NCBI GenBank assembly: GCA_002269645.1
Contig: NIVC01000014.1
Location: forward strand, 62,001 to 126,000
Direction: 5' to 3'
Length of the DNA: 64,000 nt
Source: Macrostomum lignano
Taxonomy: Eukaryota
The translations under genes were made by a program, and so were the position numbers. Shown in pieces: positions 80 through 43,794 of the stretch; positions within the stretch are counted from its first letter, which is position 1; the number at the start of each line of letters is the position of its first letter. The notes below the pieces were generated by a model that was not told where the DNA came from, made no database searches, and saw only the letters and a list, made by a program, of their open reading frames with translations.

Positions 80-3000
80 AGTTATCCGCTCTGCACTCCA
101 GGAGGCAGCTTCAGCCAAAAGAGAAGCGGAGTTTGCCGCAGGCGGCGGTCACAACTCCGGTTCCGCAGGGTCCGCTGCTCTGGGCCGGACGGCAGTGAGC
201 AGCAGGAGCGGCACCACGCCCAGCACTCGGCCGCCGAAGCGAAACGGATGGCTCAAATTAGACGAGGTGTTGGAAAATCCTGCGACGAAATTTTGGCCGT
301 TGGATTGAGCAGCAAAGGTGTGCGAAATTGATGGGATTTCGGGATCAAAATGGGATTTTAGAGCACAAATCTGGATTTCGGGATCAAAATGGGATTCTGG
401 AGCACAAATCGGAATTTGGGGATCAAAATGGGATTTTAGAGCAAAAATCTGGATTTCGGGATCAAAATGGGATTCTGGAGCACAAATCGGAATTTGGGGA
501 TCAAAATGGGATTCTGGAGCACAAATCGAGATTTTGGGATCAAAATGGGATTCTGGAGCACAAATCGAGATTTTGGGATCAAAATGGGATTCTGGAGCAC
601 AAATCGAGATTTTGGGATCAAAATGGGATTGTGGAGCACAAATCTGGATTTCGGGATCAAAATGGGATTCTGGAGCACAAATCAGAATTTGGGGATCAAA
701 ATAGGATTCTGGAGCACAAATCGAGATTTTGGGATCAAAATGGGATTCTGGAGCACAAATCGAGATTTTGGGATCAAAATGGGATTCTGGAGCACAAATC
801 GCGATTTTGGGATCAAAATGGGATTGTGGAGCACAAATCGGGATTTCGGGATCAAAATGGGATTCTGGAGCACAAATTGAGTTGCAATTCTAGGATCTAG
901 GTAAGCTCCGGGATCAAAAGGGATTCTGATGTTTAGGATCAACTCAGGAATGATGTGGAATTCTAAAATCCGGATTACATGATCAAACTGGGACTTTAAC
1001 GACATCTTCACCCTTCCGTTCCCGGCAGCCCTCCGCAACATCGACGCCTACAAGACCACGGCGGACAACAACTGCCACAGCGATACCGAGGACAACAGCG
1101 AGGAGCAGTGCCACCCTCTCACCTGCCCAGATAATCAGGACACCACAGTCGAGTCCGTGCCAATGTCCAACCTGCTGCAGGTCCCGGGCTCGTTCTCCAT
1201 GCCGGCGACAACTGAAGGCATCCAAGACGATGCCGGAGTCACTGCGTCGGACCTGGTTGAAGAGGCCAACCCTGACGCGACCTTGGTGGTGCCGCAGTCA
1301 GCTCCGGGTTCCTCAGTGCCCTCGCTTAGTAGAAAGCGTCGCAGTCACGGGCACAGTCACGGCCACGGCCACGGTCACGCACATGGTCACGGCCAGATGC
1401 CGCAGTCACTGGTGTCGGTGGCCTGGATGGTGATTTTCGGCGACGGGCTGCACAATTTCACGGACGGCCTGGCCATCGGAGCGGCATTCGCTCAGAGCAT
1501 CACTGGCGGCATCTCCACCAGCATTGCCGTCTTCTGTCACGAGCTGCCGCACGAACTCGGTGAGCACTTCCCTCTCTTCCCCATCACTTCTCACTTCCCC
1601 ATCTCCCCTCACTTCCCTTTCACCTCTCACTTCCCTATCTCCCCTCACTTCCCCATCTCCCCTCACTTCCCCATCTCCCCTCACTTCCCCATCTCCCCTC
1701 ACTTCCCCATCTCCCCTCACTTCCCCATCTCCCCTCACTTCCCCATCTCCCCTCACTTCCCCATCTCCCCTCACTTCCCCATCTCCCCTCACTTCCCCAT
1801 CTCCCCTCACTTCTCCATCTCCCCTCACTTCCCCATCTCCCCTCACTTCCCTATCTCCCCTCACTTCCCCATCTCCTCGCCTCGAGCGAGTCTGTCAGCG
1901 TCCAGGTCTCGGCGTTGTATAACAGGACGGTCTCGATCACCGCCTGGAACAGCGCCGCCCTCTGGCGGTCCGGTAGGGCCTCGGACTGCAGGACTGACCT
2001 TATAGAACGAAAGGCAGCCCAAGCAAGTCCTCGGCGACGCCGCAGATCCTCGCGGACGTCGGGAACCAGACCGCCGAGGTAGACGAACTGCTGACATCTT
2101 GGAAGCTCACTCGCCTGTCCGTCAGCGCCTCGGCAGAAGATTGCAGCCTCGGTGTCGTCCGGCACGCATAGCACGACGGTCTTCTGCGTGTTGACCACCA
2201 GGCCGACGCTCGCCGCAACGGCAACCAGCCTATCCAGCTGTCGTTGGGCGCCCTCGACGGTCGAGGACAGCAGGGCGAGGTCATCGGCGTAGCCAAGCAC
2301 GCTGAGCCGTCTCTCCGGTTGGCGTCGACCCACGCGTCGCCGCAGCAGGAAGCCGTCGTCGTTGGAAGGCAGAGCAGTCCGTAGCACCCAGTCAAGCACC
2401 AGAATAAATAGGAACGGCGCTAGCGTATCTCCCTGGAGCACCCCGGAGGATGTCTCGAAGAAATCCGATAGGCCGTCCGGTGTTGAGACAGCAGCCGTCG
2501 TGCCGTGGTACAGCGCCATGACAGCAGAAATCAGCAGCTCTGGCACGTTGTACGCACGGAGCACCTCTGGGAGCGCGTCCCTCACGACCGAGTCGAAAGC
2601 CTTCCTGAAATCGACGAAGATCAGGATCAGGGTCAACTGGCGGATGCGCGCCTCCTCGATGACTCGTCGAAGAGCCAGGATCTGCGTCACTGTGCCGCGA
2701 TGGGGCCGGAATCCGTTCTGCTCAGGTCGCAGGTACGGGTCCAGCACAGGCTGTAACCGCGATAGCAGCATGCGGTTGAACAGCTTCGCGGCGCAGGACT
2801 GTAGGCAGATGCCTCGATGCTCCTCGAGCTTGGTGGTGCCCGGCTTCTTTGGAATGGCGACGATGTGCGCCGTGGTCCATTCGTTTGGCGCCACCTCACC
2901 GAAAAGCACGCGGTTCATCACTCTGGCGACCTCAGTGGCCACGCAGTGGATCCGCAGCGCCTCGGTGGGCACCTCGTCCGGACCAAGCGCTTTGCCGCCC

Positions 3001-6000
3001 GGCGACTGCCGAGCGAACTTCACAACGTCGGCTGTGCTGACTGGGGCAACATTGAAGCTCTCCTCCGCCGGCAACGGCGTCTCCGGCGGCAGCCTCAGAT
3101 TTTCTGGAAGCGGAGGGGGCGGCGCGTTGACAATGGCGGCGAAGAACTCGCGCAGCTCGTTCCTGCGCTCGTCCGGAGTGTCGCCTGCCAGGTTGAGCGC
3201 GATGCGCCGCTTTCGCCCCGTCAGAGTGTTGATGGCGGACCAGGCCACGCGCCCTCTGGCATCGGGCCCTGCGGCAGAGACGGCTTGGATGGCGTCATCG
3301 ACAGCGGACTGCTGCCGCTGCAGGTAGACAGCCGCCAGAGCCTCCTCCGCCTCGCGAGTTGGCCGCCCACTCAGACGGAGCCTCTCCAGATCTTCCCTCG
3401 CTTCGTCGATCGCGGGGTCGTCCTGCCAGACCGGCTGCCCGCGCTGGGCCGGTCGCATCAGCGGGACTGTTTGCTCCGCAGCGGCTCGAACTGCAGCGCT
3501 CACCTCCGCGTACTCGGCTCCTCCACGCTTGTCGCCCAGCGCAGTGACAAAGGCACCGGCAAAGCGACGTCGCGTCTCGGCGTCCCTGAGCGCGCGGTAG
3601 TAGCGCCGCGGTGGCCGCTTTGGCGGACGGTAGAGCGGGTCCCGAAGCCGAAGGTCGCAGATGAGCAGCCGATGGTCGGACCGCAGAGCCAGCGGCGTAA
3701 TGGTGTGGCAGTTGGTGACGCGGCGGCGCTCACGAAAGCGCACAAGCACGTGGTCGAGCTGTGCCAGCCTCCGCGTAGCGTTCCGGCCACGCGCGTTCCG
3801 CCGCCTCCGCTTGCAGCCCACGAAGGTCGCGAGCCTGCCCGGCGACTTGCGGAATCTGGTGTTGGCCGACACCATGTCCTGTCTCTCCAGGAAGTCCTCT
3901 AGCGCTCCGGTGTTGCCGTTCTCGCGCGCTGTCACAAACAGCGATCGCTCGGACCTACGCAGAACTGCGTTCAGGTCTCCGAGAATGACCACTGTGTCAC
4001 GTTGCGCCATCTCCTCCACCCGCACCGAGAGTTGCTCGAAGAAGGCCTGAGCCTCATCGGAGCGGGTAGCAGGCGGCGCATACGCGCAGAACAGGCGGGT
4101 GTTCCGGCCGCGAAGCCGGACGTCGACCCGAAGCAGCCGAGAAGACAGGGAGATGCAGCGACAGCTCTGCTGCAGCCTCGGTCCGATCAGCGCTCCAACT
4201 CCTCCACGGCCTCGCTCATCCGCTGAGGTGTACCAGAGTGTCCAACCGGCGCCCAGGTCCTCACAGTGAAGTCCGGGGTCGGCTCTGATAGACACCTCCT
4301 GTAGTGCGATGACATCACAGCTGAGGTCGAGCGCTAGCCTCGCCAGCAGCCCTCTCCGCCATGTGGCCTTGAGAGTGCGGCAGTTCAGCGTCCCGACCCG
4401 AAGCGTGCCCTCTGGTACGGCTGGGGCTCGATGCTGGTGAGCCTCATGGTCCCCGGCGCCACCCGGAAGATCCAATTGGGCCAGCGCAGCAGCAGCTCGG
4501 CGGGCGGCGCCACGTTGCCGACCTCGCCAGTTTCGCTCGCGACGGCGTTCAACTCGCCGACGCGCGCTCCGCTGCCCTCGCTTGGTCCTGCCGCATTTGG
4601 CCGCCGCAGCAGTTAAGCGCGGCTCTCCACTCTCACCACGAGGAGGTAGCGGCATTTATCTGCACCGTGGTGCAAATAAATTAAGACTCAAGGCTCAAGT
4701 CGACGCGGCGCACGCTGGCCTGCTGCGCGCCGCCTTCAAGATCGGCAACGAGCGAGTCACCAACACGGCGCTCTATCATCGCGCCGGCCTGGCCCGTCCT
4801 AGCGATCTGCTGCGCCGTCGGCGACTCCAGCTGGCAGGCCACGTCATCCGCGCCGAGGCCTACTGCCCGGAGCCGGTGCAGGAGGTGCTGCTACTTACGT
4901 TGCAGGCACCCTACCGGCGGGGACAGGCGAGGACTCGGCGCTACGTCGACTGTCTGCTGGCTGACGCCGGCGCCCCGGACTCTGCCGGCGGTGCGGCCTT
5001 TGTTCGCGCCCAAGCTTTGAAGCGCGCCATCTGACGCTGCTTTTGTGATCTGGCAGCGTACTCTGTTGTTGTTGTTGTTGTTCCCCATCTCCCCTCACTT
5101 CCCTATCTCCCCTCACTTCCCCATCTCCCCTCACTTCCCTATCTCCCCTCACTTCCCTATCTCCCCTCACTTCCCTATCTCCCCTCACTTCCCCATCTCC
5201 CCTCACTTCCCCATCTCCCCTCACTTCCCTATCTCCCCTCACTTCCCCATCTCCCCTCACTTCCCTATCTCCCCTCACTTCCCCATCTCCCCTCACTTCC
5301 CCATCTTCCCTCACTTCCCCATCTCCATCTCTTCCCCATCTCCTCTCTCTTCCCCATCTCCCTCACTTCCCCATTTCCCAGCTCACTTCCCCATCTCCCC
5401 TCACTTCCCCATTTTCCAGCTCACTTCTCCATCTCCCTTCTCTTCCCCATCTCTCTTCTCTTCCCCATCTTCCCTCACTTCCCCATCTCCTCTCTCTTCC
5501 CCATCTCCCTCTCTTCCCCATCTCCTCTCTCTTCCCCATCTCCCTCACTTCCCCATTTCCCAGCTCACTTCCCCATCTCCCCCTCACTTCCCCATTTCAC
5601 AGCTCACTTCTCTATCTCCCTTCTCTTCCCAATCTCTCTTCTCTTCCCCATCTCCCTCTCTTCCCCATCACCCCTCTCTTCCCCATCATCCCCATCACCT
5701 CACTTCCACATCCCCCCTCACTTCCCCATCACCCCTGACTTCACCATCTCCTGCTTCTGACACAGCACCAGCCTTCAATTGCATATCCACTGCACCCTGC
5801 GCACCCACCTCAAGGCGACTTCGCTGTACTGCTCAAAACTGGGATGCGCGTCAAGCAAGCTCTGTTTTACAACGTGCTGTCATCAATATTAGCCGCAGTT
5901 GGCATGGTGATTGGCATCTTTCTGGGCAATGTGACCAGCGCCAGTTACTGGATATTTGCCATCACGGGCGGGATTTTCATCTACATCTCGTTGGTGGATA

Positions 6001-6384: not shown

Positions 6385-7695
6385 TCTGTCAGGGGGTGAA
6401 AATCGTTTCAAAAATTGTTTTCTTTTAATTTGTTTTAAAAATGCACTGATAGTTGAAAATTTTAGATGTACAAAAACCATGGGCATTAAATGATTTTTTC
6501 GATACATATCGGCTGAAGTGAAGACAGCAGCTTGCCCTGTAATAAATCATAGTAGCGAGTTTTATTAAAGCAGTTTTGGAGCTTTCTGTCAATAAACATT
6601 GATAAACAAATTGTTGTATTTTATTAAGAATTTACCAAATTATTAAAGGTCTTTGTCCTCCTTGCCTTTGCTTGTCTTTAACATTGATGCAAATTTGCTT
6701 CACTCTCTACTGATAGTATGACTGAAGTTCGCTCGCTTCATAGTTTATTCTGTTCTCTGTCGCGTAAAGCTAAAAGCTGAAACTAATGCCTGTTGTATAT
6801 ACTTTTAGAGAAATTGCATCAAAAGTACATATGTACTTTGCATTGCACTTTAAAGTACACGCGTACCAAAGCTACATTGATTCTATTTTCAGGTTCTGAT
6901 TATATTCTATATTGAGCTGTTTAATGGAACAGCGGTACTTAAATGTACTCTCTTGTTGTTTGCAGGCACTCATCCTAGTACATTATGTACCGAAATTTCA
7001 AAGTGTCCATTGCTGTTGTTGACCAGTTAAGCTTGCTCGAGAAAACTGTCATTTTATTTGCCCATTTTACTGTATGTGTCAGGAAATTTTGTGTTTAGCG
7101 ACAAGCTAAAACTGATGTTACAATAAATTTTTAATCAATTTGAATTCATCGCTTTGTCTTTGTTATTCAGACACATTAGTTGGCACCCGAGTTAGCATTC
7201 ATGCGATTTATACTCTTCTTTAATCCTTACTGACAGTTAAACGAACAAAAGCATAGACCATGGCGGTCATTGAACAGGAAATAACAGGATAGAGATTCTC
7301 TCTCTTTATTATTAAATTGAAATTGTTTCAATAGTACTTGATAATTTGCGCCCAAGTGTGTCAGAAAGATTCATTAAGTTTTGCAGATTTCGCCCTAGCT
7401 ATTTCAACCTGTCATCCCAGCCAGCCATCAATGTATAGGCCTGTGAACATGATGCAAAAAATTCACAGGTCTGAATGTAAAATTATGAAATTTGATGTAA
7501 GCACAGCTCGCATTGATACATTTACTATATATATAGGAGCTACTATAAAGCAGGTCTTCAAAAGAGAAATATTAGGGAAGAAAGGCAGAATATTGCGCTA
7601 AAATTGATCTAAGTACACGTACGCTCGTAGCGATGGGAAAAACCACAGATACTATAAATATCTGTGTTTATAGTATCTGTGGGCAGAACATCCGA

Positions 7696-8470
7696 CGGGC
7701 AGGACACCCGACAGGCAAAGCATCCAGCGGGCAGGACACCCGACAGGCAAAGCATCCAGCGGGCAGGACACCCGACAGGCAAAGCATCCAGCGGGCAGGA
7801 CACCCGACAGGCAAAGCATCCAGCGGGCAGGACACCCGACAGGCAAAGCATCCAGCGGGCAGGACACCCGACAGGCAAAGCATCCAGCGGGCAGGACACC
7901 CGACAGGCAAAGCATCCAGCGGGCAGGACACCCGACAGGCAAAGCATCCAGCGGGCAGGACACCCGACAGGCAAAGCATCCAGCGGGCAGGACACCCGAC
8001 AGGCAAAGCATCCAGCGGGCAGGACACCCGACAGGCAAAGCATCCAGCGGGCAGGACACCCGACAGGCAAAGCATCCAGCGGGCAGGACACCCGACAGGC
8101 AAAGCATCCAGCGGGCAGGACACCCGACAGGCAAAGCATCCAGCGGGCAGGACACCCGACAGGCAAAGCATCCAGCGGGCAGGACACCCGACAGGCAAAG
8201 CATCCAGCGGGCAGGACACCCGACAGGCAAAGCATCCAGCGGGCAGGACACCCGACAGGCAAAGCATCCAGCGGGCAGGACACCCGACAGGCAAAGCATC
8301 CAGCGGGCAGGACACCCGACAGGCAAAGCATCCAGCGGGCAGGACACCCGACAGGCAAAGCATCCAGCGGGCAGGACACCCGACAGGCAAAGCATCCAGC
8401 GGGCAGGACACCCGACAGGCAAAGCTTCCAGCGGGCAGGACACCCGACAGGCAAAGCATCCAGCGGGCAA
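7696..8470. repeat. 32-bp minisatellite (gggcaggacacccgacaggcaaagcatccagc), about 24 near-perfect copies
   Basis: Visible repeats; the 32-aa ORF period equals 3x32 bp. Confidence 0.95.
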
Positions 8471-8671: not shown

Positions 8672-11375
8672 ATGGTGATCGTAAAATTCGACGAAAACAC
8701 CGGAACTAATGAAGTTAAACAAATTCAAGACACGACATCCGATCAGCCGGAACATATCGAATCAACTGCAACGCCAGCTGTGGAGGCTCGAAGGCCTTCA
8801 TGCGGCAGTAGTCAGCTAGACATTGCGGCAGCGAACTTGGATGAGATCAAAGAGAAGCCGACAGATGTGGCCTGCGGTTGGCACCAGCAGTGCCAGCCTG
8901 AGTGCTGCCAGTGCTTCGCCCGACCGTCCTGCCTGCTGCTGTGGCTCTGCCTGTGCAGCTTCACCCAGGGCATGGTGATTTCCGGCTTTGTCAAGTCCGT
9001 GGTAACGCCAATCGAGCTGAGGTACGAGCTGACCTCGAAGGAGAGCGGCTTCATTGTCTCCATGTACGACATCGGATGCCTCGTGTGCGTGGTGCCAGTC
9101 AGCTACTTCGGCCACGGGCACCGGCGCAGCCGCCTCATCTCCATCGGCCTGCTAGTGATGGGCTTAGGTTCGTTCGTATTTTTCCTACCCCACCTGATCA
9201 CGGACAAGTACATCTACCAGAGCCCGGTTCCGTCAGTGTGCTACCCGGAGCCCAACAAGATTTACCCGAAGTTTTGCAACAGTCAAAATTTGAACAGTTA
9301 CAAGTACGTGCTCTGGACAGGCCAGTTCCTGCATGGCGTCGGCGCCTCGCCGCTGTACACTCTTGGCGTCGCCTATCTGGACGACAATCTCAGCATGGAA
9401 GATTCTGGCACCTTCTTGGGGATTTACTACGCTATGAGCATCATCGGACCCGCCGTTGGTTTCCTGCTAAATGCCAGGCTTCTCAACGTGTACGTGGAGC
9501 CAAGCGCGACGCCGTCGGATATCAGCCCCAACAACAGCAGCCTGTGGGTTGGCGCCTGGTGGATCGGCTTCTTGTTGTCCGCCCTGGCCTCAGTCGCAAT
9601 CGCCGGGCCGATGTTCGGCTTCCCGAAGAGCTTTCAGGGATCCGCCAGAATTCGGCTGAAGAGGAAACGAGTTCCGGAGGCGCACAGACTCGACGATCTG
9701 GTGAAGGACGCGCCTTCGGCAATCAACGGCAGCTCGATGGGCTTCTTCCAGTCGCTGATGGTGCTATTGAAGAACCCAACAATGCTGTTCCTATCGTTTG
9801 CTGGGGCAGTTCAGCTGCTCCTTCTGGCCAGCCTGTCCACCTTCGGGCCGAAGATTCTGCGCACACTGTTTGAGTTCTCAACTAGCAGGGCCACCCTGGT
9901 GATGGGGCTGGTCACAGTTTTTGCCGGCGTCATAGGCATGCTGGCTGGCGGCCTGCTGATCCGCTTCTCCAACCTGCCGCTGGGCCGCCTGCTCTGGTTC
10001 TGCGTGGCCTCCGCCGCCATCAGCTCGCTGTTCGCGCTGGGCCTCCTGCTCAAATGTCGGGGCCAGAGATTTGCGGGCATCAATCAGCATTATCCGATGT
10101 CGGCCGACCAGCAGCGTCTCTACAAACTGACAGTCGATTGCAATAAGAACTGCAGCTGTCAGGAGAACAAGTTCATGTACAACCCGGTGTGCGGAGCTGA
10201 CAAAATCGTCTATTATTCGCCCTGCTTCGCAGGTTCGCAGGGGCGGCGTAGCTTAGGGGTCACTGCGTCCGATTCTCGTGTCAAAGTGTGATGAGTGGCT
10301 TAGCGGTCACTGCGTCCGATTCTCGTGTCAAAGTGTGATGAGTGGCTTAGCGGTCACTGCGTCCGATTCTCGTGTCAAAGTGTGATGAGTGGCTTAGCGG
10401 TCACTGCGTCCGATTCTCGTGTCAAAGTGTGATGAGTGGCTTAGCGGTCACTGCGTCCGATTCTCGTGTCAAAGTGTGATGAGTGGCTTAGCGGTCACTG
10501 CGTCCGATTCTCGTGTCAAAGTGTGATGAGTGGCTTAGCGGTCACTGCGTCCGATTCTCGTGTCAAAGTGTGATGAGTGGCTTAGCGGTCACTGCGTCCG
10601 ATTCTCGTGTCAAAGTGTTTTTGGGGCTTGCGCTCGATGACAGGCCTTTGGGGTGGTCGTGCAATTCGCTCACATGAGGGCCAACCTCAAAGGCACAGAG
10701 TGTGCAATACATGTACATGCCTAAAAATCAAGACCTATGCACACACACTGCGCGAGTCTGTTCCTGCGCACTTATCCATCCGTGCGTGTGCTCAGGTATC
10801 GAAGGGAATCGTTTGACTGTTGCCCAAGGCTGCCTAAGAAAACTCTCTCAAACTTCCTGTCATTTTCAGGCTGTCAAGACAACGGCACTGTAATTGACGG
10901 AGTCCACTACTTCTCCAACTGCAGCTGCATCACGGCTCGAACGTCTGACGGATTCGCTGCAAGGCAGGACTCGGCAGGCTTCTGTTTGGAAGGAAAATGC
11001 GCCAAAACTTCCGTAATTATCGTCATGCTATTCCTGCTAACTACTTGCATATTTTCGCTATCAGTGCCGACTCTGCAGTGCACTATGCGAGTGGTGCCCG
11101 CCGAGCTGAAGGATCTTGGCCTCGGTCTGCAGTGGGTCATTGTCAGACTGTTTGGCAGCATCCCGGGGCCTCCGCTGCTGGGCCAGCTGTTCGACTCCAC
11201 CTGCAGTTTGTGGATCAGCGGGTGCGACAAGACTGGCTCGTGCAGTTTTTATAGTAGCCAGAAATTCTGGCTAACCGTGCTCCTGTTTACCTTAGTGCTC
11301 AAACTCATTGAAGTTGCGTTCCTGGCCCTGGCAGCCGTCACTTATGTTCCACCATACAGAGCGGCGCGCAAATAA
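8672..11375 (+). CDS. Organic anion transporting polypeptide (OATP/SLCO family), about 688 aa, 2 exons
   Basis: Exons 8672-10232 and 10870-11375 join as PCFAG|CQD. OATP hallmarks: SYFG, D.RWVGAWW-like SSLWVGAWWIGFL, Kazal-like CNKNCSC...PVCGADKIVYYSPCFAGC, FGSIPGPPLLG, CSLW...C...GSCSFY. Confidence 0.92.
10251..10617. repeat. 47-bp intronic minisatellite, about 8 copies
   Basis: ttagcggtcactgcgtccgattctcgtgtcaaagtgtgatgagtggc repeated. Confidence 0.95.
10619..10810 (+). mobile_element. Diverged partial copy of the tRNA-headed SINE family
   Basis: Shares gtgcaatt..ggccaacc..aaggc..ag..tgtacatgcctaa..tgctcagg with the reverse complement of 21598-21935 and 25208-25546. Confidence 0.5.
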
Positions 11376-12037: not shown

Positions 12038-15000
12038 TTAAACAAATGCAGAGTTGTCAAACTCGGACAGCTGAGTAGTGACTGAGAACACGGACAGTCT
12101 GTTCTGCTTCTGTATTTGATCGTCATGCGATTTCAACAGGTATTCAAACACCTGGTCCAGTGACAGCTGATAGAATGAGAAGTACTTTAGCTGCAATGGT
12201 TCACGGTTAGTGACCAACCACGACAGAGCCACTGAGAGCCTGGGTATGCTCTCGGAGGGCACTGACAGAGCCACGTTTGTTGTGAACTGCTCAATCACTT
12301 TGGAGCCATGAAAGTGCAGCAAAATAGCCTTGATTGCGCGTTCTTTACGAGCGCGAACAGCCTTTGGTTGTTCGCCCAGATGCGATTGGATCTGAATGTC
12401 CAAGGTGTAGTATTCTCCGTACCTGCGGCGACAGCGGTGGGTTTAAGACAGTTTGAGACTTTGCGAGCTGTCGGCTAGATAGAGATTGACATTAGATCTA
12501 GCAGTCGGCTAGATAGAGACCAACATTAGATCTAGCAGTCATCTGGATAGAGATCAACATTAGATCTAGCAGTCAGATAGATAAAGATCAACATTAGATC
12601 TAGCAGTCAGATAGATAGAGATCAACATTAGATCTAGCAGTCAGCTGGATAGAGATCAACATTAGATCTAGCAGTCAGATAGATAAAGATCAACATTAGA
12701 TCTAGCAGTCAGCTGGATAGAGATCAACATTAGATCTAGCAGTCAGATAGATAAAGATCAACATTAGATCTAGCAGTCAGATAGATAAAGATCAACATTA
12801 GATCTAGCAGTCAGCTAGATAGAGATCAACATTAGATCTAGCAGTCAGCTGGATAGAGATCAACATTAGATCTAGCAGTCAGATAGATAAAGATCAACAT
12901 TAGATCTAGTAGACAGTTAGATAGAGATCAAAATTATATCTAGCAGATAGCTAGATAGAGATCAACATTATATCTAGCAGACAGCTAGATAGAGATCAGC
13001 ACCAGATCTAGCAGTCAGATAGAGATCAACATTATATCTAGTAGACAGATAGATAGAGATTAACATTAGATCTAGCAGACAGCTAGATAGAGATCAACAT
13101 CATATCTAGCAGACAACTAGATAGAGATCAACATTATATCTAGCAGTCAGCTAGATAGAGATCAGCACCAGATCTAGCAGTCAGATAGATAGAGATCAAC
13201 ATTAGATCTAGCAGACAGCTAGATAGAGATCAACATTATATCTAGCAGACAGCTAGATAGAGATCAACATTAGATCTAGCAGACAGCTAGATAGAAATCA
13301 ACACATATTCAATTTAGCTCTGATTTGATGTCGATATCGTTAGGCAACCCGCAGCAGATGACAGATCCCACAGCAATCGGTCCAGATAAAAGAGCCAGCC
13401 AAAAGGCCGATATGGACACTCACAGGCTAACGAGTTGAGCAACCGATCCCAAGCCAACCATTAATCCATGGTTCATAATGCCAACCCGATTGCAGAGTGC
13501 CTCCGCCTCTTCCATGCTGTGCGTCGTGATCACCAGCGCTCGTTTATTGTTAGCCATAGATCTGATGACGCTCCAGATGAACCGTTTGCCCTCCGGGTCG
13601 ACTCCGGTAGAGGCTTCGTCGATGACAACAATAGACGGATTGCCCAGCAGAGCGATGGCCAGGCAGGTGCGTCGTTTGGCGCCTTCGGATAAGCTGGAGA
13701 CGCAGCTGTCTGCCTGCGACTCAAGGTCCAGGCCCTAGCAAGATGGCAATGGCAAGGTGTCAGACCGTCTGCCTGTCTGGGAGCTAGCTCGTAAAAAAAC
13801 TTTGCGAAGGCTATCGAAGGAAACCTAGCAGACTTGCCTAGATGACCCATTAAAAGGGCAAAGTCTTTACTAGAAGACACCTAGCACTCATCCAATGGGC
13901 CCGGTCACACAGCTGAAGACACCTGGAACACTCATCCAATGGGCCTGGTCACACAGCTGAAGACACCTGGCACACTCATCCAATAGGCCTGGTCACACAG
14001 CTGAAGACACCTGGAACACTCATCCAATAGGCCTGGTCACACAGCTGAAGACACCTGGCACACTCATCCAATAGGCCTGGTCACACAGCTGAAGACACCT
14101 GGAACACTCATCCAATAGGCCTGGTCACACAGCTGAAGACACCTGGCACACTCATCCAATAGGCCTGGTCACACAGCTGAAGACACCTGGAACACTCATC
14201 CAATAGGCCTGGTCACACAGCTGAAGACACCTGGCACACTCATCCAATAGGCCTGGTCACACAGCTGAAGACACCTGGCACACTCATCCAATAGGCCTGG
14301 TCACACAGCTGAAGACACCTGGCACACTCATCCAATAGGCCTGGTCACACAGCTGAAGACACCTGGAACACTCATCCAATAGGCCTGGTCACACAGCTGA
14401 AGACACCTGGCACACTCATCCAATAGGCCTGGTCACACAGCTGAAGACACCTGGCACACTCATCCAATGGGCCTGGTCACACAGCTGAAGACACCTGGCA
14501 CACTCATCCAATAGGCCCGGTCACACAGCTGAAGACACCTATAGCACACTCATCCAATAGGCATGGTCACACAGCTGAAGACACCTTTGGCACACTCATC
14601 CAATAGGCATGGTCACACAGCTGAAGACACCTTTGGCACACTCATCCAATAGGCATGGTCACACAGCTGAAGACACCTATAGCACACTCATCCAATAGGC
14701 CCGGTCACACAGCTGAAGACACCTATAGCACACCCATCCAATAGGCCCGGTCACACAGCTGAAGACACCTGGCACACTCATCCAATAGGCCTGGTCACAC
14801 AGCAATTATTGCACAATAGCAACACTCTCGAGGCCGGATTAACCGTGTGTTACTACTTCGTAGACAGAATACGCTGCTGCTATTTCTACTCTGTTTGAGC
14901 TAATGCAGGAAGACAAATCTAAAATTACCTGAAGTAGGGTGCGAACGTCCTTCTCGGCTAGGCCTTCGTGAACTCCAAGGATTTTGGCGTAGAAGAACAG

Positions 15001-21000: not shown

Positions 21001-24000
21001 TTCAAACAAATGGTACATGAACCCATTGTTAATTCATTAATTTGTTGACATTTACCTGAATTGATTTAAATTTATAGAATAGATTAATCTGGAAATTTTA
21101 GGATACTAATAAATTTTTACATTAGTAAGAGTTCCTCGTAGCTACTAACCTAATTGAGAGGAACAACTATTTCGCCACCGACGGGGGGGGGCAGGGGAAC
21201 ATGTTCCCCAGTAAAATTTATCGGGGGGACATGCCAATGCTTTGTCCCCCTCAGCACCACCTTTGTTGACCTGTTACGAAAATCAATCATTTTGTTTCAG
21301 GGCGACAAAACATAGCGCCTGCGGCAACAAAATGACGCCTGCGGCGCTAAAATGAGTGCCTGCTGCGGCGCTAAAATGAGTGCCTGCTGCGGCGCTAAAA
21401 TGAGTGCCTGCTGCGGCGCTAAAATGAGTGCCTGCTGCGGCGCTAAAATGAGTGCCTGCTGCGGCGCTAAAATGAGTGCCTGCTGCGGCGCTAAAATGAG
21501 TGCCTGCTGCGGCGCTAAAATGAGTGCCTGCTGCGGCGCTAAAATGAGTACCTGCTGCGGCGCTAAAATGAGTGCCTTTTTATTAGAGGCAGGGGGGTTG
21601 TGTGCACCCTGGCGCAATTTAAGCGTCATTGGCACACAAACCGGCGAGAGGCATTACTGCCCATTCCGCCGACTCCCCTGAGCAGGCATACAAGCGCGCG
21701 GATACGTTACGCAGGCACACACTCACACAGGAGTGTACAGCGGCCCTAACTTTATTTATTGTTAGGCATGTACACTTCACTGCGCCTTGGGGGGTTGGCT
21801 CTCAAGGCCGTTAATTGCACAAGCGAGCCAAGCCGAAATTCCAATTCAGCCCCAAATTAATGTGGCTGCACTTGGAATCGAGCCTGGGTCACGGCACACC
21901 AGAGCAGCTGCGCTACCGCTGGGCTACAGCCCCCCTAAAAAAAAATAGCGCCTGCGGCAACAAAATGGGGCCTGCGGCGCTAAAATGAGTGCCTGCTGCG
22001 GCGCTAAAATGAGTGCCTGCTGCGGCGCTAAAATGAGTGCCTGCTGCGGCGCTAAAATGAGTGCCTGCTGCGGCGCTAAAATGAGTGCCTGCTGCGGCGC
22101 TAAAATGAGTGCCTGCTGCGGCGCTAAAAAGAGTGCCTGCTGCGGCGCTAAAATGAGTGCCTGCTGCGGCGCTAAAATGAGTGCCTGCTGCGGCGCTAAA
22201 ATGAGTACCTGCTGCGGCGCTAAAATGAGTGCCTGCTGCGGCGCTAAAATGAGTACCTGCTGCGGCGCTAAAATGAGTGCCTGCTGCGGCGCTAAAATGA
22301 GTGCCTGCTGCGGCGCTAAAATGAGTGCCTGCTGCGGCGCTAAAAAGAGTGCCTGCTGCGGTGCCAAAATGAGTGCCTGCGGCGCCAAAATGATTGCTGA
22401 CAACACCGATTTTGAAAATAAGATACATGTAGGAATTTAGTCATGTACAATTCTTGGCTTTGTCCCCCACCATAAAATCCATGGCGACGCCCCTGGTAAC
22501 AATAAAAGTTTTCGCACTAGCTTATTTATACTGAGGTTCTATTGGTTATCATAAGTAAGTCGAACTCTACTGCGTTCTCTATATCGGGCGCTCTCCCAGA
22601 GGGGGGTTGAATTGCTAGTCCAATTTACTAATTATTTCCCTTTAGCCACTGAAGCGTACAAACTCGTATTACCGGAAATATTGTCGAGTATCAGGTTTCT
22701 CTCCTCGTTCTCTCGATGATTTATACCGTAGCAACCAGTTGGTAGCGATTTAGACATGTTAGACATTGTGACCACAGGCCTCAGGTCTTCCTTAATTGGC
22801 TCAATATTGGCTAGTGGAGTTGTCAACTCCGGCACTTCGCCCAAAGATCCGTCGGTTTTTGAACGACACCAGAAATCGGATTGGAAGATGTAACCGGCTG
22901 ACAGGCACAGGCCGTTGCCCGAGGCCAGCACGAAGTCCAAGTAGAGTGCCAGGCAGATGTAGCAGATCGTGTGAATGGCTGGCGAGGCGAATGCCAGCGT
23001 GGCATACCCAGCTGGAGGCACCTTGCTGGAGTCTGTGAGCAGGATGGTCTGAAGTGCGGAGCGGGGAATGATGCTTGTGATATTCTGCTTCTGAGTTGTC
23101 TGTAAGTGCATTTGTGTGAATGCCTTAGTGCCTGTCTTAGTGCCTGTCTTAGTGCCTGTCTTAGTGCCTGTCTTAGTGCCTGTCTTAGTGCCTGTCTTAG
23201 TGCCTGTCTTAGTGCCTGTCTTAGTGCCTGTCTTAGTGCCTGTCTTAGTGCCTGTCTTAGTGCCTGTCTTAGTGCCTGTCTTAGTGTCTGTCTTAGTGCC
23301 TGTCTTAGTGCCTGTCTTAGTGCCTGTCTTAGTGCCTGTCTTAGTGCCTGTCTTAGTATCAGTCTTAGTGTCTGTCTTAGTGCCTGTCTTAGTGCCTGTC
23401 TTAGTGCCTGTCTTAGTGCCTGTCTTAGTGCCTGTCTTAGTGCCTGTCTTAGTGCCTGTCTTAGTGCCTGTCTTAGTGCCTGTCTTAGTGCCTGTCTTAG
23501 TGCCTGTCTTAGTGCCTGTCTTAGTGCCTGTATTAGTGCCTGTCTTAGTGTCTGTCTTAGTGCCTGTCTTAGTGCCTGTCTTAGTGTCAGTCTTAGTGTC
23601 TGTCTTAGTGCCTGTCTTAGTGTCAGTCTTAGTGTCTGTCTTAGTGCCTGTCTTAGTGTCAGTCTTAGTGTCTGTCTTAGTGCCTGTCTTAGTGCCTGTC
23701 TTAGTGCCTGTCTTAGTGTCAGTCTTAGTGTCTGTCTTAGTGCCTGTCTTAGTGCCTGTCTTAGTGTCTATCTTAGTGCCTGTCTTAGTGCCTGTCTTAG
23801 TGCCTGTATTAGTGCCTGTCTTAGTGCCTGTCTTAGTGCCTGTATTAGTGCCTGTCTTAGTGCCTGTCTTAGTGCCTGTCTTAGTACCCGTCTTAGTGCC
23901 TGTCTTAGTGTCAGTCTTAGTGCCTGTCTGAGTGCCTGTCTGAGTGCCTGTCTTAGTGCCTGTCTTAGTGTCAGTCTTAGTGTCTGTCTTAGTGCCTGTC

Positions 24001-27000
24001 TTAGTGCCTGTCTGAGTGCCTGTCTGAGTGCCTGTCTTAGTGCCTGTCTTAGTGCCTGTCTTAGTGCCTGTCTTAGTGCCTGTCTTAGTGCCTGTCTTAG
24101 TGCCTGTCTTAGTGCCTGTCTTAGTGCCTGTCTTAGTGCCTGTCTTAGTGCCTGTCTTAGTGCCTGTCTTAGTGCCTGTCTTAGTGCCTGTCTTAGTGCC
24201 TGTATTAGTGCCTGTCTTAGTGTCTGTCTTAGTGCCTGTCTTAGTGCCTGTCTTAGTGCCTGTCTTAGTGCCTGTCTTAGTGCCTGTCTTAGTGCCTGTT
24301 TTAGTACCCGTCTTAGTGCCTGTCTTAGTGCCTGTCTTAGTGCCTGTCTTAGTGCCTGTAATAGTGCCTGTCTTAGTGCCTGTCTTAGTACCCGTCTTAG
24401 TGCCTGTCTTAGTGCCTGTCTTAGTGCCTGTCTTAGTGCCTGTAATAGTGCCTGTCTTAGTGCCTGTCTTAGTGCCTGTCTTAGTGCCTGTCTTAGTGCC
24501 TGTCTTAGTGTCTATCTTAGTGTCTGTATTAGTGCCTGTCTTAGTGCCTGTCTTAGTGCCTGTCTTAGTGTCTATCTTAGTGTCTGTATTAGTGCCTGTC
24601 TTAGTGCCTATCTTAGTGCCTGTCTTAGTGCCTATCTTAGTGTATGTTTTGGTGTCTATATTAGCGTCTTTTAGTGTCTTAGTGTAAGCCTTGAGGGCTG
24701 TCTTTGCATCTGTCCAAGTGTCTTCCGTACTGTCTGTCGCTGGACCTGACTGCCTCAGTGTCCGCCCACCCTTAACTGCCAACTGTCTAACCACCTATCA
24801 GACTCACCTGAACAACATCGCCCAGCTGTCCGGGCGGATGGAGCAGCAGCAGGGCAGTCCTGGCCGCCTTCTGATCACTCAGCAACACACTGTTAATCAG
24901 ATTGATGACCATGCCGAGCACAGCTATGAGCCCCAAGGCCAGGCCGGCCTTGCCGTAGCGGCCAACCGTAACAGAAACCAGCAGGCAGGCTGCGGCAATG
25001 CACAGGAACTGCAGCGCGCAGTGGCCGAACACTTTGGCGAGAGCCGCGCTCTGGTAGAAGTTCGGGCACTGGGCGGCCAGGGACACAGTGAATACGGTGG
25101 CGCCGAACAGGACCTGTTGGTGAATTGGAGACAGGTCTGTGCAATTTTAGGTGCCACCAACGCAGATACGTTAACAGGTTATCGACTCTACATTCTATGC
25201 GAATTTTGTTCTGTTGCTAATGTTGTTGTTCATGCTTGTGCACCCTGGTGCACTTTAAGCGGCATTGTCGCACAACCGGCGATAGGCATTACTGCCCATT
25301 CCCCTGACTCCCCTGAGCAGGCACACAAGCGCGCGGGATACGTACGCAGGCACACACTCCCACAGGAGTGTACAGAGGCCCTAACTTTATTTTATCGTTA
25401 GGCATGTACACTTCACTGCGCCTTGGGGGTTGGCCTTCAAGGGCGGTAATTGAACGAGCAGAGCCAAGCCGAGGTTCCAATTTAGCCCCAAATTAATGCG
25501 AATCGAGCCTGGGCCGCAGGCTTGGACCACTGGGCTACGGCCTCCCGTTGTTCCTGCTTTACAGAAAGTTAGTGATCTATCTATTTGTCATGTATACTTA
25601 TAACATCTGTGGGTAAACCACGGATAAATCAAACAATTTCCTGTGAAGCATTAAAGAAACCACGCACGTGCTTCTACCAGCTATGATACTTCTTTCCTAA
25701 AGAGCAAATTCTAATTGAAGTTTTGATGAACTATAAAGCATTCAACGCACATGGATCAGGTATATTGTCACCTAAACTCTATAAACATCCATTCACTATG
25801 CAGCTTGCGCATCTCACCTCAACAGCAGCGACAAGGCAGATCACTAGCCAATATGCCCGGACAGACAGGCCTTTCTGCACCAGCAGCTGTAACAATCCAT
25901 TGCCCTTCAAGTCGTAGATGCAGGACAGAGTAGCCACCAGAAAGTAGAAGTGCATCATTCCGACTGATAAGAAGCTTTGACCAGCCGTTAGTACTGGCAG
26001 AATTTCAGCAAAGTTTCTTTCCAGATGGCACATGGTACGGCCTTCGCTGCTGGAGTGATGCGAGTCGCGCTGATGTTGCCCGACAGCTCGGAACATTCGA
26101 ATGGCCTGATTTTTGCGATTGGGTAGCGCGTAAATCAGCGCAAGAATATTGTAACTATGCAGTACCGTAGCTTTAAAGCTTTGATTGCAGTTTTTGCAAA
26201 TCTAATTGCAGCTTTTGCAACTCTGATTGCAGCTGTTGCAACTCTGAGTGCAGTTCTGAAACAAAAGACAGACAAGAGCCTATATATAAATTATGACTAA
26301 CCTTAAACCGCAGCTTAGTGTGAGGATCCTTTGTCCGACCAATACTCGCCAGATAGCCAAGAAAGGGACAGTAGATCTCTGCTCCAGTTTCCAGCAGACA
26401 GACAATAAGTGGGTCGTTCGGTTTGAAGTCCACCTGCAGTTATAGAAAATTAGTTGCAGTTACTTTTTCTTCTGGCACTGCTAAAGTCTCAGATGTTTCG
26501 GGATAAAAGTCTCAGGTGTTTCGGGATAAAAGTCTCAGGTGTTTCGGGATAAAAGTCTCAGGTGTTTCGGGATAAAAGTCCCAGGTGTTTCGGGATAAAA
26601 GTCTCAGGTGTTTCGGGACAAAAGCCTCAGGTGTTTCGGGATAAAAGTCTCAGGTGTTTCGGGATAAAAGTCTCAGATGTTTCGGGATAAAAGTCTCAGG
26701 TGTTTCGGGATAAAAGTCTCAGGTGTTTCGGGATAAAAGTCTCAGGTGTTTCGGGACAAAAAGTCTCACGTGTTTCGGGATAAAAGTCTCAGGTGTTTCA
26801 GGACAAAAGTCTCAGGTGTTTCGGGACAAAAGTCTCACGTGTTTCGGGACAAAAGCCTCAGGTGTTTCGGGACAAAAAGTCTCAGGTGTTTCGGGAAAAA
26901 AGTCTCACGTGTTTCGGGACAAAAGTCTCAGGTGTTTCGGGATAAAAGTCTCAGGTGTTTCGGGACAAAAAGTCTCACGTGTTTCGGGATAAAAGTCTCA

Positions 27001-28793
27001 GGTGTTTCAGGACAAAAGTCTCAGGTGTTTCGGGACAAAAGTCTCACGTGTTTCGGGACAAAAGCCTCAGGTGTTTCGGGACAAAAAGTCTCAGGTGTTT
27101 CGGGAAAAAAGTCTCACGTGTTTCGGGACAAAAGTCTCAGGTGTTTCGGGACAAAAGTCTCAGGTGTTTCAGGACAAAAGTCTTAAGGTGTTTCAGGACA
27201 AAAGTCTCAATTTTTTCGGGACAAAAAGTCTCAGGTGTTTCGGGACAAAAGCCTCAGTTGTTTCGGGACAAATGTTTCAGGTGTTTCGGGACAAAAGTCT
27301 CAAGTGTTTCGGGATAAAAGTCTCAGTTGTTTCGGGACAAAAAGTCTCAGGTGTTTCGGGATAAAAGTCTCAGTTGTTTCGGGACAAAAAGTCTCAGGTG
27401 TTTCGGGACAAAAGTCTCAGGTGTTTCAGGACAAAAGTCTCAGGTGTTTCAGGACAAAAGTCTCAGTTGTTTCGGGACAAATGCCTCAGGTGTTTCGGGA
27501 CAAAAGCCTCAGGTGTTTCGGGACAAAAGCCTCAGGTGTTTCGAGACAAAAGCCTCAGGTGTTTCGGGACAAAAGCCTCAGGTGTTTCGGGACAAAAGCC
27601 TCAGGTGTTTCGGGACAAATGTCCCAAGTGCACTTTGCCGCAACTCAAACCTGGCTGACGTATCCGCCGGGGCTGTTGCTGTACAATCGATTGAAATGTT
27701 GAGCATTGCAATCCTCCGGGCTCTGGCACTGTTTGAACAAAAGCGAAGGATCCGAGCTTCTGGTGCCCAGCTCTCTAAGCACCGCGTCCATCGCAGCCAC
27801 TTCGCCAATGTACCGGTCCGTCTGCGTCAGCACTTCATTGTCAGACGCGAAATTGTGCGCCTGCTTGATATCGACAAACTTTTTACCATAGAATCCAATT
27901 AGCTGAGCCAAAGGTACGTAGATGAAGTTGTTGGACAGGAGGCAGGCGATCAGTGGTAGGAGCCAAAGAAATTTTGCACCCTTAAGACGAAGAAAGTAGA
28001 TCCGAAGGAAGTAACGAAATTGCCGCTTTGCCAGCATGATTGGCGGGCTGAAAGAAAGTTTACGATAGTTTTGCGTAGTCTGTAGCAGTGTTTAAGGTCT
28101 TTTAGGAGTTTCAGGGGGGGGGAGGAGTTTCAGTTTTTCCAAGTGTTTCAGGGTAGAAGTTTCAGGTGCTTCAGGGGTAGAAGTTTCAGGTGTTTCAAGG
28201 GTAGAAGTTTCAGGTGTTTCAGGAGTAGAAGTTTCAGGTGTTTCAAAGATAGAAGTTTCAGGTGTTTCAGGAGTAGAAGTTTCAGGTGCTTCAGGGGTAG
28301 AAGTTTCAGGTGCTTCAGGGGTAGAAGGTTCAGGTGCTTCAGGGTGGTCGGTTTCACAAACTCGAAATTTCAAAACCGCTAAAAGCAGTTGCTTTCATAA
28401 ACGCGAAACTTTCCAAACGCGAAACTTTACAACCGCTAATTTTTTTGCATTAACGCGAAACTTCACAACCGCTAAATTTTTTCCAGTCACTTTCACAAAC
28501 GCGAAATTTCACAAATGCAAAACTTCACAACCGCGAAACTTCACAACCGCTAAAAATTTTGCAATTACTTTCATATACAACAGTCTTTTTAGCGGTTGTG
28601 AAGTTTCGCGGTTATGAAGTTTCGCGTTTATGAAAGTAGGTGATTTAGCGGTTGTGAAATTTCGCGTTTGTGAAAGCAACCCCTTCAGGGGTAGAAGTTT
28701 CAGGTGCTTCAGGGTAGAAGTTTCAGGTATTTTAAAAACTAGAATTTTGCACGCAGTTAAGCAAAGCTAAGTCGCTGGTACTTACCAAACCAT
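12038..28793 (-). CDS. ABCA-subfamily full transporter (ABCA5/6/8/9/10-type), about 1680 aa, 10 exons
   Basis: Exons 28793-28786, 28047-27651, 26433-26302, 26105-25818, 25113-24808, 23099-22673, 18260-17012, 16468-14929, 13734-13424 and 12422-12038 are all GT-AG and phase-compatible (5043 nt); the 5' four exon ends are less certain. NBD1: GHNGAGKST, LSGGQKRK, ILDEP, STQFMDEAD. NBD2: GPNGAGKTT, LSEGAKRR, VIDEA, TTHSMEEAEALCNR. Confidence 0.88.
12474..13305. repeat. About 34-bp intronic minisatellite (gatagagatcaacattagatctagcagtcagcta)
   Basis: Visible repeats in the last ABCA intron. Confidence 0.92.
13872..14803. repeat. 44-bp intronic minisatellite (gaagacacctggcacactcatccaataggcctggtcacacagct), about 21 copies
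   Basis: Visible repeats. Confidence 0.95.
16698..16800 (-). pseudogene. Intronic 103-bp fragment homologous to ABCA coding sequence at 17361-17463
   Basis: Gapless alignment, about 84/103 identical by hand. It translates to DFTAAYGLAQPTLTDILIRLKDVDQKKVAKLFET versus DLIAAYGLAQPTLADIFIRLKDFDPKQILKLFET. Confidence 0.85.
16805..16910 (-). mobile_element. tRNA-like (SINE head) remnant
   Basis: Reverse complement begins ggggcgggaTAGCTCAGTGGtaacacctctgac (A-box). The B-box is degenerate and no full cloverleaf is visible. Confidence 0.45.
19143..20876 (+). CDS. DEG/ENaC/ASIC-family sodium channel subunit, intronless, nested antisense in ABCA intron 18261-22672
   Basis: N-terminal STTSHGLPRM (HG motif), TM1 LAWLSVFL, FPDVYAC, GVRVFL, and TM2 FISDIGGIMGIYLGMSLLTLCEIFE (GxS filter). 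Likely start is the ATG at 19143 or 19164. Confidence 0.9.
   Translation: MLQLKEAMASTTSHGLPRMVSNKPLTVRLAWLSVFLAMAGLFLKGFYDLVVKLQARQITSSLEGNSLNFRFPDVYACYENPISGSYSANVGAAEAAQINNLLNASRLIMQRELATIGITGRAAEIFEMDFSMAYPQSLPYRLLVDALAHRNEQNIITSDVTYNTDYGMPEYRPIEAETFYHPMYLRCLKWALNSTWQSKIVQTGSSSGIVVTLVTDSAFNGLATSGNDILQTVFARRTQIPVSDWSLNVADYNGPDRRAGVRVFLTPPGEYPSDFVSSFSLGPGKFHTVEIDMTQQVYKSGQFNCLDEVPSVQYVNTYDQTPYNHSYSYSYCFYYEFHKQTQDLVNMSGNVGPLPWPLRGKKFVMNLTGDSTFFVFFRDQLLVNKSSQFDRLTKSACQSKRPCSTLEYSVSVSGSDWPTQSSMAPFIRSSIAQAWQQARSRNQSVPALDLLVSANQSTAAEYIRNNVIKIHFKPRRILCDRLNFSIDYGVQEFISDIGGIMGIYLGMSLLTLCEIFELVFDIASFGRTKARASITSKQERDTEKTPRTKQINVQEFKSDPLKENPSQNVSVFSISSM
21318..22390. repeat. 24-bp minisatellite (gcggcgctaaaatgagtgcctgct) in two blocks, 21318-21577 and 21948-22390
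   Basis: Visible repeats with an 8-aa ORF period; the blocks are separated by a SINE. Confidence 0.95.
21598..21935 (-). mobile_element. tRNA-derived SINE, near full length
   Basis: Reverse complement starts ggggctgTAGCCCAGCGGtagcgc...ccaGGCTCGATTCc (A and B boxes). The body is shared with 25208-25546 and 39683-39832. Confidence 0.75.
23122..24682. repeat. 12-bp minisatellite (gtgcctgtctta), about 130 copies, fills an ABCA intron
   Basis: Visible; it is the source of the spurious TGTK/SACL/VPVL ORFs. Confidence 0.97.
25208..25546 (-). mobile_element. tRNA-derived SINE, same family, with an (AAC)n-like tail
   Basis: Reverse complement starts ggaggccgTAGCCCAGTGGtccaag...ccaGGCTCGATTC and ends gcatgaacaacaacattagcaac; colinear with 21598-21935. 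Confidence 0.75.
26485..27622. repeat. 23-bp intronic minisatellite (tcaggtgtttcgggacaaaagtc)
   Basis: Visible repeats. Confidence 0.95.
28146..28730. repeat. 24-bp intronic minisatellite (gggtagaagtttcaggtgcttcag), interrupted by a MITE
   Basis: Units at 28146-28344 resume at 28683-28730. Confidence 0.85.
28345..28682. mobile_element. Foldback-type MITE, 338 bp, 8-bp TSD cttcaggg
   Basis: TSD at 28337-28344 and 28683-28690. The left end tggtcggtttcacaaactcgaaatttc matches the reverse complement of the right end (gggttgctttcacaaacgcgaaatttc). Internal inverted subrepeats cgcgaaacttcacaaccg. Confidence 0.8.
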
Positions 28794-29067: not shown

Positions 29068-30932
29068 ATGCTTCGAGCTTGCAAATGCAAAGACCAGGTC
29101 ACTGGCAGCATGGATACAGACAGACCGGTAAGCTCCCCTGACACCCTCGTTTTGACACCTCTGACATCCCTGTTCTGAGATCACTGAAATCCCTGTTTTG
29201 ACATCCCGACATCCCTGTTCTGACACGTCTGACATCAATTATGACACCTCTGACATTCCTATATCCCTGTTTTGACGCCCTTGACATCCCCGTTTTGACA
29301 TCTCTGACATCCTCGTTCTGACACCTCTGACATCCCTGTTCTGACACCTCTAACATCCCTGTTCTGACACCTCTGACATCCCTGTTCTGACACCTCTGAC
29401 ATCCCTGTTCTGACACCTCTGACATCCCTGTTCTGACACCTCTGACATCCCTGTTCTGACACCTCTGACATCCCTGTTCTGACACCTCTGACATCCCTGT
29501 TCTGACACCTCTGACATCCCTGTTCTGACACCTCTGACATCCCTGTTCTGACACATCTGACATCAATTATGACACCTCTGACATCAATTATGATACCTCT
29601 GACATTCCTATATCCCTGTTTTGACGCCCCTGACATCTCCGTTCTGACACCTGACATCCCCGTTCTGACACCCCTGACATCCCTGTTCTGACACCCCTGA
29701 CATCCCTGTTCTCACACCCCTGACATCCCTGTTCTCACACCCCTGACATCCCTGTTCTCACACCCCTGACATCCCTGTTCTGACACCCCTGACATCCCTG
29801 TTCTCACACCCCTGACATCCCTGTTCTGACACTCCTGACATCCCTGTTCTCACACCCCTGACATCCCTGTTCTCACACCCCTGACATCCCTGTTCTGACA
29901 CCCCTGACATCCCTGTTCTCACACCCCTGACATCCCTGTTCTGACACTCCTGACATCCCTGTTCTGACACTCCTGACATCCCTGTTCTGACATCCTTGAC
30001 ATCCCTGTTCTGACACTTCTGACATCCCTGTTCTCACACCCCTGACATCCCTGTTCTGACACCCCTGACATCCCTGTTCTGACACCCCTGACATCCCTGT
30101 TCTGACACTCCTGACATCCCTGTTCTGACACTCCTGACATCCGTGTTCTGACACTTCTGACATCCCTGTTCTCACACCCCTGACATCCCTGTTCTCACAC
30201 CCCTGACATCCCTGTTCTGACACTCCTGACATCCGTGTTCTCACACCCCTGACATCCCTGTTCTGACACTCCTGACATCCGTGTTCTCACACCCCTGACA
30301 TCCGTGTTCTCACACCCCTGACATCCGTGTTCTCACACCCCTGACATCCCTGTTCTGACACTCCTGACATCCGTGTTCTGACACTCCTGACATCCCTGTT
30401 CTGACACCCCTGACATCCCTGTTCCATGCCAAATCAATCAATATGCACGCGGCATACAGGTGAGCTGCCTGCACGACTATGAGCACTGGCTGCGGATGCA
30501 CTCTTGCAAGATGCGCGAGCAGTTCAGCAACCCGCCGAGCCGAAATCCCAACATTCTGGGCTACCGGCTGGAAAAACTGCTCGGCCGCGGCTCCTTTGGC
30601 GTGGTGTTTCTGGCCGTTGCTAGGGAAACAAAAGAGAGCTACGCAATCAAGGTGCCGTTGTATAATATGCTGCGTAACCACTAACAATTGATTCAAAAAA
30701 GTTTCAATAAATAAATAAATAAATAAATAAATAAATCAGTCAATCAGTCAATCGATCAGTAAATCAATCAATAAATAAGTCAATCAATCAATAAATCAAT
30801 CAATCAATCAGTTTATCAATCAGTCAATCAATCAATCAATCAGTCAATCAATCAATCAATCAATCAGTCAATCAATCAATCAATCAGTCAATCAATCAAT
30901 CAATCAGCCAATCAGTCAATCAATCAGTCAAT

Positions 30933-36686: not shown

Positions 36687-43794
<7,108 letters not shown>

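Follow-up and report, generated by a model that had tools for sequence, protein, structure and literature searches.

The window examined here, 64,000 nucleotides of the flatworm Macrostomum lignano (GenBank assembly GCA_002269645.1, contig NIVC01000014.1, positions 62,001 to 126,000 of the forward strand; coordinates below count from the first letter of the window), contains at 1879-5082 a copy of an RTE-like long interspersed nuclear element (LINE) that lies in two pieces, the first 2.8 kb standing in the opposite orientation to the last 0.4 kb. This arrangement is probably the product of a single insertion of a young RTE-like LINE into an intronic minisatellite, in the course of which the 5' 2.8 kb was inverted by twin priming, a reading to which we give a probability of roughly 0.65. 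The order of the parts, the presence of only one tail, a small overlap between the pieces, a candidate target-site duplication (TSD) and the position of one breakpoint at the 5' end of the element are all as expected from twin priming as it has been drawn for L1.

Structure of the two segments

The element measures 3204 bp when both pieces are rejoined, and its anatomy can be read directly from the letters. The inverted 5' segment (1879..4686, minus strand; right end uncertain within 4681-4690) comprises the 5' untranslated region (UTR) and codons 1-925, with the ATG at 4655-4653, while the non-inverted 3' segment (4687..5082, plus strand) comprises the last 113 codons (4693-5034), the 3' UTR and the tail. 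On the minus strand, an open reading frame (ORF) of 934 aa (1851..4655) matches its relatives up to ...WTLTDSLEA, where the match ends at base 1879, and then continues into translated 18-bp repeat (ARRWGSEGR). On the plus strand, coding sequence starts at 4693 (...LQLAGHVIR...KRAI) and runs to a stop codon at 5032-5034, which is followed by a 3' UTR of 30 nt and a (GTT)6 tail (5065..5082), the last TT of which may be target-derived. The order of parts is array, inverted 5' part starting from the breakpoint, forward 3' part, tail and array. When the segments are joined via the shared CTC[G/A]AGGC, they give 1038 codons with a terminal stop only. The copy is dead on arrival, because its ORF is split and its 5' part has neither 3' UTR nor tail. 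No additional copy of the element was found within the window by blastn with both pieces as query.

The overlap at the inversion point is 8 nt long. Its first copy (1879..1886, minus strand) reads CTCGAGGC in the sense direction and its second (4687..4694, plus strand) reads CTCAAGGC, the two being identical at 7 of 8 bases with a single G/A difference. The AGGC within the overlap is a derived state common to both copies, the relatives showing ACAT or AAAG at this place. An overlap of 14 nt with a 4-nt slippage deletion (GACTC...AAGGC) was also considered and is not preferred, because it brings no more than 2 further matches compared with the overlap of 8 nt.

Across the breakpoint, the rejoined protein aligns free of gaps with nine full-length homologues of 1036-1087 aa, the window copy reading AQVDAAH on the C-terminal side, and two M. 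lignano fragments (P0025 and P0082) are colinear over the same place, reading TDSLEQQVDAAH and TDSLEQQVNAAH, respectively. In nucleotide alignments, positions 2234-2806 of the inverted piece (2809 in all) correspond to 96-671 of the related copy L004 and positions 8-392 of the forward piece to 675-1058, so that the pieces abut on a colinear relative with an overlap of 7-8 nt. Identity to L004 is 89.1% for the inverted and 87.0% for the forward piece, and identity to L005 is 87.2% and 83.2%, respectively. Judged from these alignments, the two pieces are about equally diverged from both relatives and are complementary halves of one element.

Most of this structure had been proposed in a first-pass annotation made from the letters of the window alone, namely a minus-strand endonuclease and reverse transcriptase (RT) ORF breaking off at ...WTLTDSLEA, its missing C-terminus on the plus strand from 4693 with a (GTT)n tail behind it, an in-frame rejoining to about 1038 aa without stops, the order of the parts between two stretches of target, and an overlap of AGGC with 7/8 matching bases. 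All of these points hold, and the check that it recommended, flipping the 5' part and aligning the result to relatives, yields the colinear protein and the equal divergence described above. It had further placed the inverted piece at 1879-4668, including the start codon and essentially the whole 5' 2.8 kb; the inversion and its extent stand, but the right end does not, as the piece reaches about 4686 and takes in the 5' UTR together with a hairpin at the 5' terminus.

The 5' end of the element

The conserved 5'-terminal hairpin (TTTATTTGCAC / GTGCAGATAAA; 4655..4680, minus strand) has its end at the start-codon A, and 6-10 further bases lie between the hairpin and the inner junction. RNAalifold applied to the window copy and the relatives L001, L002 and L003 draws 15 pairs and finds compensatory changes at 4 (hairpin at 7-44 in L001, ~104-140 in L002 and ~46-82 in L003), and an AU-rich 5' hairpin is also present in L045 and L046, where repeated 5' units suggest that the terminus of the family lies 3-8 nt upstream of it. 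As the inverted piece extends to this conserved hairpin, it stops at most a few bases short of the element's 5' terminus, and the copy is, by this comparison, essentially full length. One inversion breakpoint therefore coincides with the end of the element, as twin priming predicts.

Target site

The element is flanked on both sides by an 18-bp minisatellite with the unit CCCCATCTCCCCTCACTT, delimited by TRF and by a unit-by-unit listing. The left flank (1570..1876) ends at phase 10 with the partial unit CCCCATCTCC (1867-1876), the candidate 5' copy of a TSD, and two letters TC (1877..1878), which may be additional nucleotides or belong to a variant unit of the array, separate it from the element. 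The right flank (5083..5751) begins at phase 0 with a complete unit, whose first bases (5083-5092) are the candidate 3' copy. The first-pass annotation had recognized the 18-bp tandem repeat and held that any TSD would be hidden in it; the repeat is there, but the duplication is not entirely hidden, since the phase offset of the array yields a candidate TSD of 10-14 bp, namely CCCCATCTCC (10 bp), 12 bp if the TT shared with the tail is counted or 14 bp with one mismatch, all modulo 18. This candidate starts with T, as has been reported for the TSDs of (GTT)n-tailed RTEs (PMC6007223). At the left junction, CCTC is common to the target unit and the priming site in the element, and a tandem CCTCG-CCTCG at 1875-1884 straddles the boundary, so pairing over 2-4 nt with slippage would be possible. 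No (AAC)n is present at the left junction (1879), the single tail being on the forward piece; therefore, the inverted piece never carried a tail of its own.

Proposed twin-priming mechanism

From these features we infer the following order of nicks and priming events. The endonuclease would nick the bottom strand between ...CACTT and CCCC, and the freed bottom-strand end (...GGGGAA-3') would pair with the (GUU)n tail of the RNA and prime the first-strand cDNA. The top strand would then be cut 10-14 bp downstream, before the first cDNA exceeds about 390 nt, and its freed 3' end (...CCCCATCTCC) may anneal within the same RNA at ...CUCGAGGC, perhaps via the shared CC/CCTC. Primed in this way, a second cDNA would copy the remaining 2.8 kb up to the RNA 5' end, while the first (395 nt, bottom-strand primed) would halt where the second had begun, after displacing about 8 nt. 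Joining of the two cDNA ends and filling of the gaps would leave target, reverse-complemented codons 925-1 and 5' UTR, forward codons 926-1038, 3' UTR, (GTT)6 and target, in that order.

Ostertag and Kazazian are said to have set out twin priming of 5'-inverted L1 in 2001. A description of the model for L1 is given in PMC2912911, and in L1 twin priming the cDNA overlap has a median of 12 bp with quartiles of 4-17 bp (PMC12016303), a range that includes the 8 nt found here. The 5' inversions of L1 accompany TSDs of 10-20 bp (PMC4245944; TSD range also in PMC2912911), and the candidate of 10-14 bp falls in this range. The twin-priming geometry named by the first-pass annotation is supported in these respects (order of parts, single tail, overlap), the mechanism being drawn from one locus.

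Several observations weigh against this reading. The left junction shows no strict microhomology (C1878 stands where A is expected) and may include 2-3 extra bases. Of the 5'-inverted copies of L1, about 95% have microhomology at the 5' junction and only 3.9% have extra bases (PMC2912911). The overlap contains the G/A mismatch, and the periodicity of the target leaves the length of the TSD ambiguous. The case consists of a single locus, and none of 16 close relatives (of 46 loci fetched) is inverted, all being colinear, in a sample too small for a rate. A look-up of the 934-aa ORF in public contigs returned no exact match, and database proteins matching the ORF that spans the inner junction (4582-5034) cover its C-terminal 77-79% only, none of them crossing that junction. 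Retrotransposition assays in cells yielded 5' inversions almost solely with human L1 in human cells, apart from one Nimb-2_DR insert, and none with ZfL2-1 (PMC4245944), so the prior for such an event in another clade is uncertain.

Alternative explanations

The alternative that survives best, and which we nevertheless regard as unlikely, is a later inversion, in which a colinear full-length copy was inserted first and the segment from the 5' junction to codon 925 was subsequently flipped by two breaks or by a replication template switch, a staggered inner break giving rise to the 8-nt inverted duplication. Staggered breaks do leave inverted duplications at breakpoints, as twin priming does, and the 5' junction, with its possible extra bases and without clean microhomology, resembles end-joining. 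However, this sequence of events needs one breakpoint to fall within a few bases of the 5' terminus of the element, a coincidence that twin priming explains without a second rare event, and no inverted array sequence is found at the inner junction.

An assembly artefact, with a colinear element at the true locus, seems improbable. The setting is a long minisatellite in a window 32% of which consists of tandem arrays and is hard to assemble, and neither junction is spanned by an independent contig or protein in the public collections searched. On the other hand, the 2.8 kb is present once and not as the palindrome typical of chimeric long reads, the inner junction shows an 8-nt overlap with a mismatch, the array flanks stand in a consistent phase offset of 10-14 bp, and the breakpoints share no repeat able to mislead an assembler.

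Two independent insertions, i.e. a 395-bp 5'-truncated plus-strand copy and an adjoining minus-strand copy, are very improbable even though 5'-truncated copies are the commonest LINE product (PMC2912911), for the minus-strand copy would have to be 3'-truncated and tail-less, which target-primed reverse transcription does not produce, its truncation would have to lie within 8 nt of where the other copy begins, without any target sequence in between, and both pieces carry the derived AGGC and are equally diverged from relatives.

Clade and family

By structural definition and by its alignment to SR3 of Schistosoma mansoni, the element is best placed as an RTE-like LINE. RTE-clade elements are about 3.2-3.9 kb long when complete and encode one ORF, after which come a very short 3' UTR and a short-repeat tail (PMC1291365). 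The ORF of such elements has about 920-1070 aa, with the apurinic/apyrimidinic-type endonuclease at its N-terminus. The rejoined copy falls within this size range, and Pfam finds in its 1038-aa protein only an apurinic/apyrimidinic-type endonuclease domain (PF03372 Exo_endo_phos, 34 bits, E 3e-8; aa 89-306; 3738..4391, minus strand) and an RT domain (PF00078 RVT_1, 101 bits, E 1e-28; aa 601-861; 2073..2855, minus strand; PDB matches to the RT cores of R2 and L1 ORF2p), a single ORF with neither RNase H nor ORF1 as in the RTE clade. Its 3' UTR of 30 nt followed by (GTT)6 corresponds to the very short 3' UTR and the tri- to pentanucleotide repeat of that clade. These features bear out the RTE-type architecture with a microsatellite tail that had been suggested from the sequence at first sight. 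SR3 gives one colinear match over aa 84-983 at 26% identity (250 bits with tblastn, 259 with phmmer), compared with 81 bits for R2Bm and 68 bits for L1 ORF2p, both over the RT core only. A (GTT)n tail is tabulated for plant RTEs (PMC6007223). Among the relatives, seven (L001, L003, L004, L005, L007, L008 and L045) carry (GTT)n tails.

The GC content of the element is 65%, against 45% for the window, and that of the relatives L001, L004, L045 and L006 is 59-65%. Animal RTEs are described with AT-rich 3' ends, and the 59-65% GC of the element and its relatives is unusual.

Named homologues of the element are mostly from M. lignano, and over about 300 aa the M. lignano model P0026 differs from the ORF of the window in one frameshifted patch only. 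This near-identity and the intact rejoined ORF mark the family as young. Close relatives (50-90% identity; L001-L014, L018, L045 and L046) lie on short environmental metagenome contigs (ENA, JGI), and relatives at 50-90% identity were also obtained from one Logan run; the metagenome relatives presumably derive from meiofaunal flatworm DNA in the samples.

Terminal RNA structures

A stem-loop in the 3' UTR (ACGCTGC...GCAGCGT; 5034..5059, plus strand; fold -12.7 kcal/mol, z -3.7) starts at the A of the TGA stop codon and closes about 5 nt short of the tail. A stem at the same position with a different sequence is found in all eight copies folded singly (window, L001, L004, L005, L006, L007, L011 and L012), and by this comparison the structure is kept by compensatory change across all of them. 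A joint RNAalifold alignment of the 3' UTRs gave no structure because of indels, whereas the singly folded UTRs gave the stem, and no Rfam family matches it. By analogy with other LINEs, this stem-loop is likely to be an RT recognition signal of the stringent type.

The hairpin at the opposite end could serve to define the 5' end, in promoter activity or in translation. Upstream of it, tandem 5'-terminal units of about 17 nt are present in at least 8 copies in L046 (1-150) and in 2 copies in L045 (1-35), which could be a promoter repeat of the monomer type or the outcome of RT stuttering on reaching the 5' end of the RNA. Near the 5' end of the window copy, Rfam reports a match to the HDV-like ribozyme drz-agam-1 (4591-4664, minus strand) at 29.5 bits, against a gathering threshold of 37. 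P2, P3, L3 and P4 can be drawn, but the P1 strands UGCAGAU and GAGAGUG are unpaired; the core CCUCCUCG is made of the codons for L-P-P-R, and seven relatives gave no match to drz-agam-1. A ribozyme was rejected on these three grounds, and the match is probably due to chance.

Host gene and surroundings

The insertion lies in an intron (1560..5814, plus strand) of a ZIP zinc-transporter gene (PF02535, 135 bits), the exon before it ending in ...HELPHELG, and this intron consists almost wholly of the 18-bp minisatellite and the element. The flanking exons (1157-1559 and 5815-~6003, plus strand; HELPHELG / DFAVLL) include a His-Gly repeat loop at 1346-1395. No effect of the insertion on the ZIP gene is evident. 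Tandem arrays with a period of at least 10 bp make up 32% of the window, and landing in an array is therefore unremarkable. The minisatellites of the window have periods of 10-60 bp and mostly unrelated units, and many are near-perfect (e.g. 333-877, 7682-8469, 12466-14803, 23124-24642, 26483-27630, 29249-30424, 40464-42984 and 59551-61108). A frame of 539 aa with a Kazal domain (8672-10291, plus strand), provisionally identified as an organic-anion transporter of the OATP (SLCO) family, enters a 47-bp tandem array (10251-10618) at its 3' end.

Significance

Taken alone, the locus is one dead copy in an intron. Because cell assays saw the event almost only with human L1 in human cells, it has been proposed that 5' inversion depends on host factors as well as on the LINE species (PMC4245944). 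The twin-priming literature searched covers only mammalian insertions driven by L1, i.e. L1 itself or the Alu, SVA and processed pseudogenes mobilised by it. A 5'-inverted RTE-like copy in a flatworm suggests that the pathway is open to other endonuclease-type LINEs, and would widen the known range of such products to include another clade of LINEs and another phylum. We give about even odds to the broader conclusion that twin priming is not peculiar to L1 and mammalian hosts, that in this RTE-like flatworm LINE the top-strand nick can precede about 400 nt of first-strand cDNA, and that the top-strand 3' end, needing hardly any microhomology or none, can prime a second, fully processive cDNA of 2.8 kb on the same RNA. 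If true, two active RT molecules would be present per integration complex in a clade without ORF1. The family, young and apparently active, occurs in an animal that serves as a transgenic model, in which this could be put to the test.

Comparison with known systems

The locus resembles 5'-inverted L1 copies in consisting of two adjacent segments of one element, of which the 5' one is inverted and only the non-inverted one carries a tail, as well as in the few bases of overlap where the segments meet (8 nt in this copy, against a median of 12 bp in L1), the candidate TSD of 10-14 bp and the dead-on-arrival product. It differs from them in host and element, a flatworm and a (GTT)n-tailed RTE-like LINE instead of a mammal and a poly(A) L1, in the extent of the inverted segment, which takes up 88% of the element including its 5' end, and in that the 5' junction lacks clean microhomology.

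The short stem-loop just before the tail repeat, with its compensatory changes, is like the 3' stem-loops of stringent-type LINEs (L2 and related elements), but unlike these it matches no Rfam family.

With the LINEs of the RTE clade (RTE-1 of Caenorhabditis elegans, SR2 and SR3 of S. mansoni, BovB and the plant RTEs), the element has its length (3.2 kb) and its intronic location in common, as well as an ORF of about 1000 aa that encodes both an endonuclease and an RT, and a very short 3' UTR that runs out in a trinucleotide repeat. SR3 aligns colinearly with it over aa 84-983, although at an identity of only 26%, and the schistosome elements are AT-rich whereas the element here is GC-rich (65%). 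Most animal RTEs have A-rich tails, whereas the (GTT)n tail of the M. lignano element is of the kind found in plant RTEs.

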